Below, one piece after another: positions 53,198 to 64,000 of a stretch of DNA of 64,000 nucleotides (the stretch's first letter is position 1; every line of letters starts with the position of its first letter). The stretch spans positions 62,001-126,000 of the forward strand of contig JAPDFW010000011.1 of NCBI GenBank assembly GCA_028826165.1. The letters run 5' to 3'. The notes beneath the pieces were generated by a model that was given only the letters and a program-made list of their open reading frames with translations, was not told the DNA's origin and ran no database searches. This DNA is from Anaeramoeba ignava BMAN. Its lineage: Eukaryota; Protista; Anaeramoebae. The position numbers and the translations under genes are program-made.

Positions 53198-56100
53198 TTA
53201 ATTTTTTAATTTGTTTGATAAATCTTTAAATTGTGAATATTTTTCTCTAATTATATCTTTTCCTTTTTTATCAATTTTCTTTTTTTCAAAAAAAGTGTTT
53301 ATAAACTCTTGAAAATGTATAAAGATCCAAAAATATTCTTAATTTATCTTGTTTAATTTTGTTTTTAATTTGATTTCCATTTTCATTTTGATTTTCAAAT
53401 TGATTTTATCTTGAATAAAGGTTTTATCAATTTTATCTTGTGGAAATCCATAATGTTTATTAAATTCTAAAATATATCCATATATTTCTTTTTTGATTAT
53501 TGATTTTTCAATTAATAATTGTTTTAAATTCATTTTTTTGTAGTTCTTTTGGTTGTTGTAAAATATATCTTTGAATATTTAATCTTGAATTTGAAGTTTC
53601 GATAGCTTGATATTCTTTTTTTTCGAAATCAAATTCTCTTTTAATTTTATTTGGAAATTCTTCAAAAATTCTGAAATAATGATTTTTACAACTTTTTAAT
53701 ATTTTTCGTGTTCTAAATCCTCGATATAATTTTGTAATTTTAATTGATGATTTTGTTTCAATATATCTTTTTAATTTGAAAATTAAATGAATATGAATCA
53801 ATATTTTGGAATAATCATTATCATCTTTTGCTTCTCTTTCATTTTTATATTTGAATTTTTTCTTGAAACTTTCCATTTTGACTATAAATATTCGATAAAG
53901 ATAAATTGATTCTTCATTTGAAAATTTTAATTGATTTAATTTCATTAAATTTTGGATCATTGTTTTTGTTTTTCCTTGAAATTTATTCAAAATATTTTCA
54001 TATTGTTTGATGATATTCTTCGTTGAATGAAGAACATCTTGCATTTTTTTTGTATTTGATTCTTTTGGTATCATATAAATTATATTCAGATATATTAATT
54101 GCTAAGATTTTTCCAATTTCCATTTTATTTATTTCTTGAATAATTTCTTTTATATTTTTTTCTTTATCAAAATTAATTTGTTTTTGGATTGGTTTTATAT
54201 CATAAAAAAGCATCATTTGTTTTTCATTAAACTCAAAATTTTCATTATTATTTTTTGTATTACTTTCATTATTAATATTATTAATATTATTATCATTATT
54301 TTTGTTTTACTGATTCTATAGGTTTAGAAAAAGAAAAATTAAAAATCAAATTAATTCAAATTATATATTAAAATTACTTTTCTGTTTCATCAAAAGATAT
54401 TAAATCTTCAATAGAATCGATTTTGTTAATTTCTGGTTTTTCAATTATTTTTTTTTGATTTTGGTTTGTTTTCTTCTTTTTTAGATTCATTTTTAGATTC
54501 ATTTTTAGATTTATGTTCAGATTTATGTTTAGATTTATTTTTAGATTCATTTTTAGATTTATTTTTAGATTCATTTTTAGATTCATTTTTAGATTCATTT
54601 TTAGGTTCATTTTTAGATTCATTTTTAGATTCATTTTTAGATTCATTTTTAGATTCATTTTTAGATTCATTTTTAGATTCATTTTTAGATTCATTTTTAG
54701 ATTCATTTTTAGATTTATGCTTAGATTCATTTTTAGATTCATTTTTAGATTCATTTTTAGATTCATTTTTAGATTCATTTTTAGATTCATTTTTAGATTC
54801 ATTTTTAGATTCATTTTTAGATTCATTTTTAGATTCATTTTTAGATTTAGATTCATTTTTAGATTCATTTTTAGATTCATTTTTAGTTTCATTTTTTAGA
54901 TTTAGTTTCATTTTTAGTTTCATTTTTAGTTTCATTTTTAGATTCATTTTTAGATTCATTTTTAGTTTCATTTTTAGATTCATTTTTAGTTTCATTTTTA
55001 GTTTCATTTTTAGATTCATTTTTAGATTCATTTTTAGTTTCATTTTTATATTCATGTTTAGATTCATTTTTAGATTCATTTTTAGATTCATTTTTAGATT
55101 CATTTTTAGATTCATTTTTATATTCATTTTTAGATTTATTTTTAGTTTCATTTTTATATTCATTTTTAGATTCATTTTTAGTTTCATTTTTAGATTTATG
55201 TTTATATTCATTTTTAGATTTATGTTTAGATTTATTTTTAGTTTCATTTTTAGATTTATTTTTAGATTCATTTTTAGATTCATTTTTAGATTCATTTTTA
55301 GATTTATTTTTAGATTCATTTTTAGTTTCATTTTTAGTTTCATTTTTAGTTTCATTTTTAGTTTCATTTTTAGATTTATCTTTAGATTTATGTTTAGATT
55401 TATTTTTAGATTCATTTTTAGATTTATCTTTAGATTTATGTTTAGATTTATGTTTAGATTCATTTTTAGATTTATCTTTAGATTCATGTTTAGTTTCATT
55501 TTTAGATTCATTTTTAGATTCATTTTTAGTTTCATTTTTAGATTTATCTTTAGATTTATGTTTAGATTCATTTTTAGTTTCATTTTTAGATTTATTTTTA
55601 GTTTCATTTTTAGATTTATTTTTAGATTTATCTTTAGATTTATGTTTAGATTCATGTTTAGATTTATGTTTAGATTCATTTTTAGATTTATTTTTAGATT
55701 CATTTTTAGATTTATTTTTAGATTCATGTTTAGATTCATTTTTAGGTTCATTTTTAGGTTCATTTTTAGTTTCATTTTTAGTTTCATTTTTAGTTTCATT
55801 TTTAGATTCATTTTTAGTTTCATTTTTAGTTTCATTTTTAGTTTCATTTTTAGATTTATTTTTAGATTCATGTTTAGTTTCATTTTTAGTTTCATTTTTA
55901 GATTCATTTTTAGATTCATTTTTAGATTCATTTTTAGATTTATCTTTAGATTTATGTTTAGATTCATTTTTAGATTCATTTTTAGATTCATGTTTAGATT
56001 CATTTTTAGATTCATTTTTAGGTTCATTTTTAGTTTCATTTTTAGTTTCATTTTTAGTTTCATTTTTAGTTTCATTTTTAGTTTCATTTTTAGTTTCATT

Positions 56101-58362
56101 TTTAGTTTCATTTTTATATTCATTTTTAGATTTATCTTTAGTTTCATGTTTAGATTTATTTTTAGTTTCATTTTTAGATTCATTTTTAGATTCATTTTTA
56201 GATTCATTTTTAGATTTATCTTTAGATTTATGTTTAGATTCATTTTTAGATTCATTTTTAGATTCATTTTTAGATTCATTTTTAGATTCATTTTTAGATT
56301 CATTTTTATATTCATTTTTAGATTCATTTTTAGTTTCATTTTTAGATTCATTTTTAGATTCATTTTTAGATTCATTTTTAGATTCATTTTTAGTTTCATT
56401 TTTAGTTTCATTTTTAGTTTCATTTTTAGATTCATTTTTAGATTCATTTTTAGATTCATTTTTATATTCATTTTTAGTTTCATGTTTAGTTTCATGTTTA
56501 GTTTCATGTTTAGTTTCATTTTTAGATTTATCTTTAGATTCATGTTTAGTTTCTTTTTCAATTATTTCTTTTGATTTTTGTGTTGTTTTTGATTCTTTTG
56601 ATAATTTTGGTGTATTATCAGCTGTTTTATCTGATTCTTCAATTTCTTTTCTAAGTTGTTCAAGTTGTGATTCTGTAAAGAATTTCCCAAATGCATTCTA
56701 TTTAATTGAATTTTTATTTATTATTATTAATTATTATAATTGTTTTATATTGTATTTTTTACTTTTGACAAATTGAAATTGAAATTAGATTTATTATTTT
56801 GAATTTGATTTTGAATTTCATTTTCAATTTGATTTTCAATTTGATTTTGATTTTGATTTTGATTTTGATTTTGATTTTGATTTTGATTTTGATTTTAATT
56901 TTGATTTTGATTTTGATTTTGATTTTGATTTTGATTTTGATTTTGATTTTGATTTTGATTTTGATTTTGATTTTGATTTTGATTTTGATTTTGATTTTGA
57001 TTTTGATTTTGATTTTGATTTTGATTTTGATTTTGATTTTGATTTTGATTTTGATTTTGATTTTGAATTTGATTTTGATTTTGATTTTGATTTTGATTTT
57101 GATTTTGATTTTGATTTTGATTTTGATTTTGAATTTGATTTTCATTTTCATTTGGATTTTGATTTTTATTTTGATTTTGATTTTTATTTTGATTTTGATT
57201 TTTATTTTGATTTTCATTTTGATTTTCATTTTGATTTTCATTTTGATTTTGATTTTGATTTTGATTTTCATTTTGATTTTGATTTTGATTTTGATTTTCA
57301 TTTTGAATTTCATTTTGATTTTCATTTTGATTTTCATTTTCATTTTGATTTTGATTTTCATTTTCATTTTCATTCTTGTTTTCATTTGGATGAAGATATT
57401 TATTATTAATGAATAAATCTTCAAAATTTAATATCATTTTTTCTAATGGTGAAACATTTCCAATAGCAAGAAGATTAACATTTGATCTACTTAAATTAGG
57501 ACCAATAACAGCTGCTAAATTTTTAGAATCCATTTTATTCTTTTAGAATATTCTGCTACTTTTTTTAAATATTGAATTAAATATTGAAGAACATCTTGAT
57601 GAATTTTTGGTAATTTTGAAATTAAAACTGAAATTTGATCTAAAGTTCCTGTTTAAATAATTTTTTATTAATTTCATTTCTTGATTAATTGATTTTGTTT
57701 TTGTTTTTGATTTTTTTTTAAATAAAATTAACTGGCTTGATTCCATTTTTCAAATAAATCAAATGTAAATAAAGGTTCAGGTAAATCTCTAAAAAATGTT
57801 TTAAAAACTCCAGCAATAACATTTGGATCTTTAATTTTAGAAAAATCACAATTTCCTCCTTTTTATTTTTATTAATTATTTTTATTAATTATTGAATTTA
57901 GAAAGAAAGAAAGAAAAAAAATTTATTTTCTATTTATGTTTGTTTTTTAAAAATACTTTTATTATAAGAATCAATAACATTTTCAATTTGAGTTAAACTT
58001 CCTGGAACTCGAAATATTCCTGTTAAATTTAATGCTAAATAAATATATAAAATATAATTTAATAAAAATGAAAAAAAAGATTTTTTTATTTTATAAATTT
58101 TATTAATTTACAATTTTTTCAAGATATTCAACTAAATCTCTTAAAACTTTAGGAATATTTCCTTCACAATTTTCTCTTTCAACTAATTTAATAAGTGAAA
58201 CACCAAATATTTTTGTTTCATTTTGATTCTGATTTTGATTATTTTTTTTCTTTTTTAATCGAACTAAAAATTAAAAATTAAAAATTGAAAATTTAAATTA
58301 AAAATTAAAAATTTAAATTTAAATTAATTTTTTTCTGTTTTACAAATGTTTTTAATTGACAT
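53198..58362 (-). pseudogene. FAM13-like RhoGAP copy 2, repeat-expanded and C-terminally disrupted
   Basis: Same exon structure as copy 1, with a 2.1-kb 12-mer insertion and a longer NQ tract. Deletions around 53400-53430 remove EMIPLYSRYYQIKKLL and break the frame. Confidence 0.6.
54470..56553 (-). repeat. Exonic 12-bp minisatellite (AAAAATGAATCT variants; NESK/NETK/HESK/DKSK)
   Basis: About 170 units, absent from copy 1. Confidence 0.92.
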
Positions 58363-58483: not shown

Positions 58484-61400
58484 TTAAAAATACTTTTGCC
58501 AATCTTGATTTGGAACTATTGAAAAATCAAGTTCAAAAGGGAGAATTTGATTTGAATTAAATTTATCTTCAAGTGATTGATCTGTATTTGGAAGAGAATC
58601 ATTGGAAATAACAAGTTGATGAAAAATATTAAGATTTTCTTTTGCGATTGGTATTGGATCAAAACTAGAAAATAATTAATAAGATAAAATAAGATTAAAT
58701 TAATAAAATAAGATTAAATTAAATTATAAGATAAAATAAGATTAAATAAAATAAAATAAGATTAAATAAAATAAAATAAGATTAAATAAAATAAAATAAG
58801 ATTAAATAAAATAAAATAAGATTAAATAATTAATAAAATAAGATTAGATTAAATAAAATAAGATTAATAAAATAAGATTAATAAAATATAATAAGATTAA
58901 TAAAATAAAATAAGATTAAATTAAATAATAAGATTAATAAAATAAGATTAAATAAAATAATAAAATAAGATTAAATAAAATAAAATTAAATTAAATAAAA
59001 TAAAATAAGATTAATAAAATTGTTATTTACTCATCTTTTTGGAAATTAATTAAAAGTTTCTCCACTTGATATAAACTAAGAGAAGGACAAATTGTTTGGA
59101 GAACTTCTTGATATTTGTTTTCAGATATTTCTTTTAAAATTGTCTTATTTAATATAATACAATTCGCAGAATCAACTAAGGTTTTAAATTCTTGACTAAA
59201 AATACCAAAAATATTAAAATTTCTTGTTTTTAGAAAAAAAATGTTTTTTTTTGTTCTTTTTGATGATTTTTAAAGAATAAAATACTTCATTGATGTGTAT
59301 CCTTTATCTGAGAGCCATTTTGAAAATTGCTCAATAACATATTTAGTTTGAATAGAATTTGAACAAGTGCACAAATAGATATTTTTGAAAAATTCCAATG
59401 TGAGAAATGAATTGAAGGAGAAACAAAGTTGTCTGATTGCAAATTTCTCAAATTGTTTTGGAACATAATTGTTTTTAAATAAATTAATAATCTCTTGGAA
59501 TCCAGAAATGATATCCGACAAAGAAGCGGTTTTGGGTGAATTGATTTTTTTTGGATTTGATATCATTTGGTGTTCGTGAATAAGAAAGGCTTGAATTGCT
59601 TGTGTTTTGAATTCCTTGATGAAGATGCGATTAAGGGATGAAAAGGCATCGAAAATAAGATGAGAAAATTTCGAAATGAAATCCTTAAGATATTCCAAAT
59701 GAGGAGAAGATTTGCACGAAACGGATTGGTGTATAACAGCAGTAATAAAGAAAACATTTGAGATGATCCAACAAAGTTCAGGCTTTTTCTCTTGGTTTTG
59801 GCTAGTCAAGGAGCTCCAAAAATCGAAGAAGATTTGGAGGAAATCTGAGCAATTATTATGAAAACCGTTTTTCAGCAAAAACTTGACTACTAATAATCCT
59901 GAAGCGGGATATCCTTGGTTTGTGTACTCTTTCTTTCCGAAATAGTATTCTTGTTGGATCAATTTATAAAACTCGACAACTTGGTTGAGTCTTGAGATTG
60001 TCTTTTCTTTGCTTTTGGATGTTTCTTTATCCTCAATTTCGATTGTTTTGCTGAGATTTGTGATCCGCGATTTCTTGATGACGCTTGGAGAAAGATCTTC
60101 AAATTCGTCACTTTGAATATCACTAAGAATTGGTTGTTCTGCTTTGATTTCATCTTTTTGTTTTGTGGGTTGGTCTGGGAATTGGAATTCGAATTGGTCT
60201 TCGAATTGGTCTGAATCAAGGTTTAAATCGTTTTCGTTGTCAGTTGAAAAAGAAAGACTTGAATCATCTAATTCTGATTCTTGATCGAAATCCCATTTCC
60301 AATCTGATTGAAGATCGATATATCCCTTTTGAATGCAATAGTCAATAACGATATGGCTTCGCTTGATTTCTTCTCTCATATCCATGTTGTGGTTCTGTAT
60401 TTTCTCGTAGAATTGTTTGAGTAGACTTTCTGAGCTTTCCAACTGGGTGACTTTGTCAAGTAGCTCAAACTCCTTATTCTTCATTTTTGTTAGTTCTCTT
60501 AATAATTTGCTATTTTCATTTCTTTCTATTTTCAAGTCCTCTTCCAACTTCGATATTTTCACTTGCAATTCTCCAATTGATTTCAGTGTCTTGTTTTTGT
60601 TCATTTTGGCTGTGAACTGCTCTCGGAATTGTTTGAGTTCTTTTTCTTGTTCTTCGTTGCATTTGTTTGAGTTTTGTAGTTGAAGTTCATAGCTTGAGAT
60701 TACTGATGATTGTTGTCGAATTTTTTCCTTCTCGCTTAAAATTTGTTTTTCAAGAAATTGTTTTGATAAAATGAGTGATTCTATCACCTGATATAAATCA
60801 TTAATTTGATTTTCAAAGTGTTTGTTTGGGATATCTTCTTTTTCTTTCTTATTTTGAATTTGAATTTGATTTTGATTTTGATTTTGATTTTGATTTTGAT
60901 TTTGATTTTGATTTTGATTTTGATTTATATTTTGAATTTGAATTTGATTTTGATTTTGATTTTGATTTTGATTTTGATTTTGATTTTGATTTGTGATTTC
61001 TTCTATTATAAATTCAAAAAGAAAAAAAAGTAATCAATTAAAAAGAGAAATGAATTTATTAAAAAACAACACAAACTTGGTTGATCTTTTTCTGAAAATT
61101 GTAAATTGAGATATAATTTGGTTTCAAGAAATTCTTTCTCTAAAAGTAGTTCTTGTGTAAGATTAATTAAATTCGTATTTTCTTTATGCAAATTTAAAGG
61201 AGTATTGTTATTTTCATCTTTTTTTTCATTTTTGGGTTTATTTTGATTTTTCTTCATTTCGAAAATTAATTCAAATTAAAATTTTAAAAAGAAGGAATAA
61301 TTTTTTTTTTGTAATTAAAATAAGATTTACAAGCTTTTTTTCAAGTTTGGAAATCATTTCTTCAAGTTGAATATTCGCAATTTCTAATTCTGCTTTTTTT

Positions 61401-63219
61401 GCTATTTGTTCTTTTAAATGAACATTTTCATGAACAATATTTTCAACTTCATGATTGTCAGGTTTGAGATTTATATTCTTTTGCCATTGCGAAAATGCCA
61501 AGATATTTGAATTGATAATTGGTTCTACTTTCTAAAGAATGAAATTAAATTAAATGAAATTAAATTAAATTAAATTAAATTAAATGAAATGAAATTAAAT
61601 GAAATGAAATTAAATGAAATTAAATTAAATTAAATGAAATTAAATGAAATTAAATGAAATTAAATGAAATTAAATGAAATGAAATTAAATTAAATTAAAT
61701 TAAATGAAATTAAATGAAATGAAATTAAATTAAATGAAATTAAATGAAATTAAATGAAATCTACAGAAACAATATTTTCTTTTTTGTTAAAGAGCTCTTT
61801 GAAATGTTGGAATTTTTTAGTATATTTTTCAATGTCTGCTGTAAGTTCAGAGTTTTTAACAAGAGTAGATTTCAAAGTTGATTCAATTTTCTTAAATTTT
61901 GATTTTTTTTGTTCAAGTTTTGTATGTTCCACATTTAAAAAATCGGATCTAGACATATTTTCGATTTCTTTTTGAAGTTCTATAATTATAATTTTTAATT
62001 ATTGATTTAATTTTTAATTGATTTAATTTTTTATTGATTTAATTTTTAATTGATTTAATTTTTTATTGATTTTTTAACCTTGAATCCGTGATTTTAAAAG
62101 TTTAACTTCAATTAAACATGCATTTGTTGATTCTTGTCTTATAGCATTATTTCTAATTTGCTTTGCCTTTTTGGCAAATTGTAAAGTTGAGAGAGTAGCA
62201 AAAGATGAATTGTGATGAGGAGAAATATTGCAAATAATAGCAGTTTTATGAGAACCACCGATCGAATTCTTGAGAAGAAAAGTGAGTTTTGAATCGGAAA
62301 AAGGAATATATTGATGTTGTTCATTTGAGGCAAGAGAATAAAGAGCACCAATAACGTTGTGCAAAGCAAACAAATTAGGATCTGTTTTTACTTGATTTTT
62401 AAGAGGCATTCCACAAATTTGGTCGTGATTTTCTCTTTGGGAATCTCCAAGATCAACGAAATGAAGTTTTGATATTTGGATGTTAGTGACACCATTTGTT
62501 GTGAAAACTTTTCTTTCGAGGGAGATCGAAAACCACACATGGGAAAGAGAGCTCCCCTTGTTTGAACTTTTGACACTGATCATCTTGCTCTCGTTCCCTT
62601 GACGCAAAACACTCAAGACATCCTTTAGATTGTGAGCAATGACTTCTTTTAATCCGTTGACATCAGGACCCAAAATGGGATTTTTTTGAATATTCAAATT
62701 TGTTGAGGTTGGAGAAAGAAGATCCACAAGAGAATCCTCATAAATTTCGAAGTATTTGCATGTGATTTGGAAGTCTATTTTGGCATTTTTTCTTTCCTTC
62801 TTTTTTTCCGACTTGATTTTTTGGAAAATATCATCAACAATACGCGGAAGTAAACCTCTCATTTGAAAAACAGGGTCTGTTTTCTTTTCTGTTTCAAGGG
62901 ATTCCAATGAACCAAAAAGTGTGAAAGATTTTCCTGAGTATTTATCTCCGAAGGCGATGATTGTTGATGTGAATCCTTGCATAAAGGCATTTGAGAAGGA
63001 TTTTCCAATGAAATTATGAACTTGTTCTTGAGAAGTGTCTTCATCCATAACGTAATCAAACCCAAATAGTTTTGGTGGATCAGTCAAAAGTGCAATTTCG
63101 TTTCGAAGATTCCTCACCTCTATGCATTTATCTGGTCCTTTTTCTATTTCTTCTTCAAGTAAGGGTCTAACTCTTATTAAAACACTTAAATCTCTTTGGA
63201 TTGTTAAATTTGTTGTCAT
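58484..63219 (-). CDS. Kinesin-like motor domain + coiled coil + Dilute (myosin-V tail) domain protein, 7 exons
   Basis: Exon 1: VLIRVRP, GDKYSGKSFT, FEIYED, DSKLTFLL, TLSTLQFA. All downstream GT-AG joins are in phase to IRQLCFSFNSFL...LCTCSNSIQTKYVIEQFSKW...ICPSLSLYQVEKLL...DDFD. Confidence 0.8.
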
Positions 63220-63392
63220 TTATTGAATTAGTTATTTTTTTTTTTAAATCTAAAAGAAGAAAAAAATGAAAGATTGAAAATAAAAAAAAATAAAAAATAT
63301 AAAAAATAAAATTTGGTTTTAATTGTTTAAAAGAAAAAGAAGGAAATTTTTTATTTGAAAAATTTTTTCGTTTTTCTTGATCTTTTCTTTTT

Positions 63393-64000
63393 TTATAATT
63401 CAAATTCGACATTTAAAAATTTTGAAATTGGAGAAGTTTTCTCGAGTTCAAGAGCTGATATGAAACATTTTGCGGCTTCTTTGTAATAGTTTGAAGGATT
63501 ATTATTATCGAGTTGGGCTTTTCTTTGCAAAACTTTTCCAAGACAATACCAGACTCTGTGATTCATTGGATCGAGCCTGATAGAACTTTTGAGAAAAGAT
63601 TCCGCAAGATGGATGTTGTATTGTTTTTCTGTTTGATTTGGTGAAATTTTCTGGTGGTTTTCTGTTGATTTTTGTTGCGGAAGGGAGGAAAGATTTGGAT
63701 CATTAAGATGATTTGAAATCAATGATTCTTTTGGGTTGTCAACAAGGGAGTATTCGTTTTTTGATCTATGAAGATAAGAATGGACATTGGAATTTGGTTT
63801 CAAATGGAGTTTTGATTTTGATTTTGATTTCTGTTGGGGATCGTCTGTTTTGGAGTCTTTGTTGTTGCTGTTGTCATTTCTTTTATTTTTGCTATTATCA
63901 TTATTTTTTGGATTGTCATCATTTCTTTTATTTTTGTTATTATCGTTATTTTTTGGATTGTCAGTATTTTCGCTATCATCACCATTTTCCGAGTCGATAA
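63393..64000 (-). CDS. C-terminal part of a TPR protein, TTC7/Ypp1-like (runs off the window)
   Basis: LAESFLKSSIRLDPMNHRVWYCLGKVL...AAKCFISALELEKTSPI matches the TTC7-type terminal TPRs. Confidence 0.7.
   Translation of the reverse strand, partial: IDSENGDDSENTDNPKNNDNNKNKRNDDNPKNNDNSKNKRNDNSNNKDSKTDDPQQKSKSKSKLHLKPNSNVHSYLHRSKNEYSLVDNPKESLISNHLNDPNLSSLPQQKSTENHQKISPNQTEKQYNIHLAESFLKSSIRLDPMNHRVWYCLGKVLQRKAQLDNNNPSNYYKEAAKCFISALELEKTSPISKFLNVEFEL

Follow-up and report, generated by a model that had tools for sequence, protein, structure and literature searches.

Kinesin KCBP, a kinesin-14 that carries a MyTH4-FERM module, provides a precedent for a kinesin bearing a domain typical of myosin tails, and the kinesin-fold heads of Smy1p, Vik1/Cik1 and KIF26 lack motility and serve as tethers, partners or passengers. 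A gene comparable to both situations was analyzed here in Anaeramoeba ignava BMAN, on a stretch of 64,000 nucleotides of contig JAPDFW010000011.1 (positions 62,001 to 126,000, hereafter the window; G000:C2:62001-126000 of the 42.8 Mb A. ignava genome, G000). Its predicted product of 1264 residues would combine a kinesin-12-derived head, a stalk of ~550 residues and a myosin-V/XI-type globular tail (DIL domain) of ~340 residues. The proposed reading, given a probability of roughly 0.6, is that of one expressed gene, the divergent copy among the three genes of a kinesin+tail family, with a degenerate head acting as tether or partner and not as a walking motor.

As originally predicted, seven exons spliced in phase as one gene (Table 1). 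In an exon-by-exon check each exon was open in the running-phase frame, GT..AG borders were found at every intron, and all peptides quoted in the original prediction were recovered on the minus strand. The spacers between the seven open stretches were AT-rich and partly composed of tandem repeats, as seen from the open reading frame listing and from reading the sequence, and exon G+C was above intron G+C in a very AT-rich window (13-37% G+C). Exon 2, in the stalk, was weakly similar to a stalk exon of the paralogue L001 described below. Exon 5 encoded, in this order, an (NQ)n repeat (~60998-60851), a coiled-coil-like stalk, an acidic linker and the globular tail, which began at ~59986 and had its ~230 first residues encoded there.

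A single public run (X1, type of run unrecorded) contained this DNA, and it behaved as a transcriptome because its contigs were without introns, each missing segment being bounded precisely by CT..AC (GT..AG when read on the strand of the gene). Depth was 0-7 in introns versus 71-79 in exons, and was alike for the head contig (71.5) and the tail contig (79.2). Record 2 of this run (1795 nucleotides) joined 63244-62079, 61979-61765, 61531-61331 and 61251-61077, then continued 38 nucleotides into exon 5, while record 1 (1934 nucleotides) joined exons 5, 6 and 7 (60835-59286, 59195-59031 and 58664-58493, with 43 nucleotides upstream) and record 3 displayed no relevant joins. Five of the six GT..AG splice joins were seen directly in the contigs, and the joint between exons 4 and 5 was given by the loose end of record 2. 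The single transcript of the original prediction was recovered in two spliced parts, exons 1-4 joined into exon 5 and exons 5-6-7 joined together, with a repeat gap of ~86 nucleotides unspanned between them.

Head and tail could in principle belong to two adjacent genes or to separate transcripts wrongly merged into one gene model, as the (NQ)n repeat of exon 5 was not spanned by any one contig. Such an artefact appeared very improbable: the splice from exon 4 entered exon 5 at a point upstream of the repeat, the first part of the tail contig was located inside this same repeat, exon 5 formed a single 571-codon open frame through it, and the same head-to-tail order and spacing occurred at two other loci. 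The contig break is read here as an assembly break inside the perfect (AATCAA)n repeat and not as the limit between two transcripts.

The head of this single gene was clearly of kinesin type. Exon 1 matched Pfam Kinesin (PF00225) at 244.7 bits over profile positions 1-327 (curated cut-off 29.3), and the scan of the own genome gave 244.8 bits. The closest solved structures were those of KIF15, a kinesin-12 (192 bits, versus 169 for KIF4), and the head probably derives from kinesin-12, an assignment made from best matches and not from a tree with reference kinesin families. The head exons had no exact match in the protein collection searched. Two further loci of the genome, L001 (G000:C58) and L002 (G000:C72), also encoded kinesin heads, with 345 and 339 bits against Pfam Kinesin versus 245 for the window head. 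The best database matches of the L002 head were KIF15 and KIN-12 proteins, at 44-50% identity.

Motif conservation was scored against the 120 best kinesin-12-like proteins of the database. Twelve positions that were invariant or nearly so in these proteins (119-120 of 120) were replaced in the window head, in the P-loop, both switches, L11 and L12 (Table 1). The positions replaced there were kept in L001 and L002, which displayed canonical motifs (GQTASGKT, SSRSH, DLAGSE, INRSL and PYRDSK). The window P-loop still fitted the Walker A pattern GxxxxGK[ST]; RxRP and DSKLT were likewise retained, as was the hydrophobic core. In studied kinesins, microtubule-stimulated ATP hydrolysis requires the salt bridge between the switch I Arg and the switch II Glu as well as the Gly of switch II and the Asn of L11, and a mutation at any one of these sites is enough to abolish it. 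Since Arg was lost from switch I, Gly and Glu from switch II and Asn from L11, the window head is probably ATPase-dead and most probably not a stepping motor.

These replacements bear directly on the version of the original prediction, in which an active stepping kinesin hauls myosin-V-type cargo along microtubules. The retained kinesin fold (244.7 bits), the Walker A loop (GxxxxGKS), the RxRP and DSKLT motifs, an intact and expressed gene, and two paralogues that look like true motors are all in line with activity. The four residues lost from switch I, switch II and L11 are, however, conserved in 119-120 of the 120 relatives, and the long branch of the head (see below) also fits a changed function, which makes an active motor unlikely. 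The kinesin head of the original prediction was confirmed, while a canonical motor was not, residues of the P-loop, switch I, switch II, L11 and L12 being replaced.

The helical C-terminus had been assigned to the Dilute globular tail, and three lines of evidence agreed with this: a Pfam DIL profile match, a family profile and a predicted fold. Searched exon by exon, Pfam DIL gave 14.6 bits at the end of exon 5 (profile 3-49) and 20.6 bits in exon 6 (profile 58-102), two collinear halves that each stay below the curated 24-bit cut-off; read through the intron, the match reached 30.6 bits. A family alignment (A2) was built from 22 tail pieces cut from A. ignava DIL loci, and the window tail scored 117.6 bits against a profile of the 21 other tails of the same genome (leave-one-out). 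Like the kinesin match of the head, these tail scores lay far above chance level. The A2 profile matched the Arabidopsis myosin XI-K tail (expectation value, E, 3e-27), the human myosin Va tail (3e-23; Va/Vb/Vc about 1e-23) and the yeast Myo2p tail (1e-10), and its matches to myosin tails spanned ~210 positions, well past the 105-residue Pfam DIL domain.

The portion of the tail encoded by exon 5 was modelled with AlphaFold and A2 (264 residues; the final ~110 residues come from exons 6 and 7), giving a predicted local distance difference test score of 84.2 and a predicted template modelling (TM) score of 0.78. All of its 40 best PDB matches were myosin V/XI globular tails (TM-score 0.57-0.66 by the model, 0.65 for MyoVa tails), among them the Myo2-tail-Smy1 complex 6IXQ, at a tail identity to solved myosin tails of 12-15%. 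Its profile matches and its modelled fold identify this C-terminus as a true globular tail of the myosin-V/XI type.

Single-sequence searches reached less far. No solved structure was matched by the window tail, the family profile alone reaching the myosin tails. A whole-library HMMER search with the exon 5 tail part against 1.84 billion representative proteins reported three matches, and the gene's own protein was absent from these. The first two (E 3.5e-7 and 2.8e-6) were A. ignava proteins with an NT-C2 and a DIL domain and no myosin head, P0001 (KAJ5074139.1, named 'myosin-7') and P0002 ('nucleolar-like protein', encoded in G000 at 99% identity), and the third, a low-complexity repeat protein, had no DIL domain. 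The public names of the NT-C2+DIL proteins are misleading and are corrected here. A word search with the 505-residue tail open reading frame gave no match among proteins of 278-884 residues, and one with the P0002 tail region found only itself. In the ESM Atlas, searched by features and shape among clusters of at least 50 members, DIL and Ank+DIL clusters were retrieved, and more weakly the related Vps53/Sec6 fold, with no kinesin+DIL cluster.

In genome scans, Pfam detected ~24 DIL loci and the A2 profile 26 tails, alongside ~11 kinesin loci and ~6 myosin-head loci. Three tails, those of the window gene, L001 and L002, were each preceded by a kinesin head of the same strand at a distance of 2.6-2.7 kb, and the latter two are predicted to be single genes from order, strand and spacing. 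The fusion is no one-off, two more kinesin+DIL loci with intact motors being present in the same genome. None of the 120 closest kinesin-12-like proteins displayed a DIL or A2-type tail (proteins of 264-877 residues only were covered). The DIL match of L002 was split at about the same profile position as that of the window gene, and in L001 the first DIL half alone was detected. In most A. ignava tails the Pfam DIL match broke at profile position 50-57, approximately at the intron 5 site of the window gene; this shared position suggests a common intron among A. ignava tails.

Separate trees of heads and tails, as proposed in the original prediction, were informative for the heads and star-like for the tails. 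Among eight A. ignava kinesin heads, the three tail-bearing ones clustered together (Shimodaira-Hasegawa-like approximate likelihood ratio test, SH-aLRT, 96), with a branch length of 2.07 for the window copy versus 0.27 and 0.47 for the L001/L002 heads. One fusion followed by duplications is compatible with these data.

The longest head branch of the three, the loss of 12 invariant or near-invariant positions, and the most divergent tail, without any single-sequence match to solved structures, could also be those of a decaying duplicate, still expressed, having lost its function and becoming a pseudogene. This appeared improbable, and less likely than an active motor, as a stop-free frame of 1264 codons is maintained over the seven exons at a G+C of 13-37%, GT..AG borders and splicing are preserved for all six introns, and exon G+C remains above that of introns. 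The tail model is moreover still a confident globular-tail fold, and the head retains its hydrophobic core motifs.

The nearest relatives of the window tail were found in the 26-member tail family of its own genome, for the most part attached to NT-C2 domains, and not among myosins, so that a domain swap from an actin motor, as suggested in the original prediction, was not shown. At least 9 of the 26 tails sat downstream of an NT-C2 domain (examples of tail loci in G000 are C66:133717-138354, C60:296983-299069 and C115:868455-873470). In the genome profile scans, no tail (0 of 26) was located near any of the ~6 myosin-head loci, and no class V/XI-type myosin was detectable in the A. ignava genome by these scans.

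The degenerate member of this three-gene family could function as follows. The head has kept the kinesin fold and the Walker A loop and lost the residues which, in studied kinesins, couple microtubule binding to ATP hydrolysis. The stalk contains helical, probably dimerising segments, the (NQ)n repeat and the acidic linker, and the tail, by analogy to myosin V tails, could bind Rab-type or other organelle adaptors. Probably unable to step, the head would keep cargo attached to microtubules, serving as a static tether or a brake; alternatively, the protein could be a non-catalytic partner pairing through its stalk with an active paralogue. A broader scenario is advanced tentatively and looks rather doubtful at present, in which Anaeramoeba, without myosin V, hangs an ancestral myosin-V-type cargo tail on kinesin-12-derived heads and so brings Rab-marked cargo onto microtubules, the window copy being a dedicated ATPase-dead brake, anchor or dimer partner for the two active chimeras.

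Several points weigh against the proposal of a single expressed gene with a tethering or partner head. Microtubule binding may itself be weakened by R308S, the replacement of the L12 Arg in YRDSK, and the loss of ATPase activity is read from motifs only. The tree of 22 tails was a star, silent on origin; the three kinesin tails as one clade were not rejected (approximately unbiased test, p 0.195), with which a single fusion origin is compatible and by which it is not shown. On the transcript side, ~86 nucleotides (about 60964-60879) of in-frame (AATCAA)n repeat in exon 5 were not bridged by contigs, so that one continuous mRNA is deduced and was not seen end to end, and the RNA nature of X1 is taken from the missing introns and not from its record. 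Searches and folding were done exon by exon.

No description of the kinesin+DIL architecture was found in the full-text literature searched, and it was absent from a pan-eukaryote kinesin survey and from a Dictyostelium kinesin review, in agreement with the original prediction, to which it was not known as an established family. A Dictyostelium origin, first considered because of the AT-richness and the NQ repeats, was rejected, P0002 being an A. ignava protein encoded in G000 at 99% identity and that review containing no kinesin of this kind. Kinesin+DIL proteins are very likely already present in the public A. ignava proteome under automatic names. Both modules are well known; their combination is new to the literature searched, and its extent is known for the A. 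ignava genome only. To this the window locus contributes spliced-transcript evidence, the context of a 26-member tail family and a non-canonical head.

The three genes would represent a natural track-swap experiment, in which a cargo module whose study has been confined to actin motors (and afadin/RADIL) is placed on a head of the microtubule-binding kind, the myosins of this lineage being, by these scans, without a DIL tail. The family also provides its own internal control, with two intact-motor copies and one dead-looking head, which makes both the cargo choice of the tail and the role of non-catalytic kinesin heads directly testable.

Table 1. Features of the kinesin+DIL gene (positions in the window) and myosin-head loci of the genome (G000 coordinates)
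Feature	Position	Strand	Description
Whole gene	63219-58484	-	7 exons, in-frame, 3795 nt = 1264 codons + stop
5' untranslated stretch	63220..63244	-	Record 2 of run X1 starts at 63244; ATG at 63219
Exon 1, kinesin head and neck, residues 1-380	62079..63219	-	Pfam Kinesin 244.7 bits, profile 1-327
P-loop, residues 91-98	62926..62949	-	GDKYSGKS versus GQTGSGKT; replaced Q, T, G and T each 120/120
Switch I, residues 223-227	62539..62553	-	SSLSH versus SSRSH; Arg in 120/120 and in both paralogues
Switch II, residues 256-261	62437..62454	-	DLGDSQ versus DLAGSE; replaced A 120/120, G 119/120, E 120/120
L11			TDPNL versus INxSL; I, N and S each 120/120
L12			FSDSK versus YRDSK; R 120/120
Intron 1, 99 nt	61980..62078	-	Absent from record 2; CT..AC ends on + strand
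Exon 2, helical stalk	61765..61979	-	Contig record 2, frame check
Intron 2, 233 nt, tandem repeat	61532..61764	-	Record 2 stops at 61765, restarts at 61531
Exon 3, stalk	61331..61531	-	Contig record 2, frame check
Intron 3, 79 nt	61252..61330	-	Contig joint 61251/61331
Exon 4, stalk	61077..61251	-	Contig record 2, frame check
Intron 4, 74 nt	61003..61076	-	Record 2 has a loose end of 38 nt at 61077, exactly reverse-complementary to 61002-60973
Exon 5, 571 codons, no stop	59286..61002	-	Record 1 covers 60835-59286 and 43 nt upstream
Pfam DIL (PF01843) match, split by intron 5	59033..59437 (G000:C2:121033-121437)	-	30.6 bits, profile 3-104, through the intron; cut-off 24
Intron 5, 90 nt, within DIL domain	59196..59285	-	Contig joint 59195/59286
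Exon 6, second DIL half	59031..59195	-	Pfam DIL, contig, frame check
Intron 6, 366 nt, tandem repeat	58665..59030	-	Contig joint 58664/59031
Exon 7, C-terminal end of tail and stop codon	58484..58664	-	Contig, frame check
Myosin-head loci	C117:73845-76115, C93:378561-382260, C56:117098-121058		Genome G000
Myosin-head loci, continued	C61:409025-411664, C91:287228-288478, C81:35045-38345		Genome G000

Introns 2 (61532-61764) and 6 (58665-59030) consisted nearly entirely of short tandem repeats, with units like AATTTCATTT and CTTATTTTATT. Upstream of the gene and on the same strand, 63393-63803 (-) corresponded to the last exon of a protein judged TPR-like by eye, which ended ~170 nucleotides before the ATG. 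Downstream, also on the same strand, an exon at 56895-57533 (-) had a long NQ repeat at its end. Positions 54441-56574 held ~2.1 kb of low-complexity repeat open on both strands, with (KMNL)n and (FRFI)n open reading frames of ~700 codons. Elsewhere in the genome, Pfam Kinesin positions 252 and 254 lay ~1.5 kb apart in the kinesin locus G000:C64:110316-113084, which may be the intein-bearing kinesin mentioned in PMC10710043.

Compared with known systems, the window protein shares with class V/XI myosins (MyoVa, Myo2p, Arabidopsis XI-K) a tail of homologous helical fold, with Pfam DIL above cut-off, while the myosin head and IQ neck found upstream of the tail in those proteins are replaced by a kinesin head. 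With kinesin-12 (KIF15 and plant KIN-12/PAKRP/POK) it shares an N-terminal head followed by a long stalk. Kinesin-12 proteins have a long coiled-coil stalk without a globular cargo domain, whereas the window protein ends in a DIL globular tail, and the catalytic motifs of its head are degenerate. Within the same genome, L001 and L002 displayed the same head-stalk-tail order at ~2.6-2.7 kb spacing, with canonical motors unlike the window copy, and P0001 and P0002, with a tail of the same family, began with an NT-C2 membrane-targeting domain where the window protein has its kinesin head. KCBP differs in that its module is MyTH4-FERM and not DIL, is N-terminal, and accompanies an active, minus-end-directed motor. 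Smy1p works together with a myosin V tail, as two separate proteins in yeast, whereas both modules stand in one chain in the window gene; if the broader scenario above is true, this gene would be the one-chain counterpart of the yeast Smy1-Myo2 pairing.

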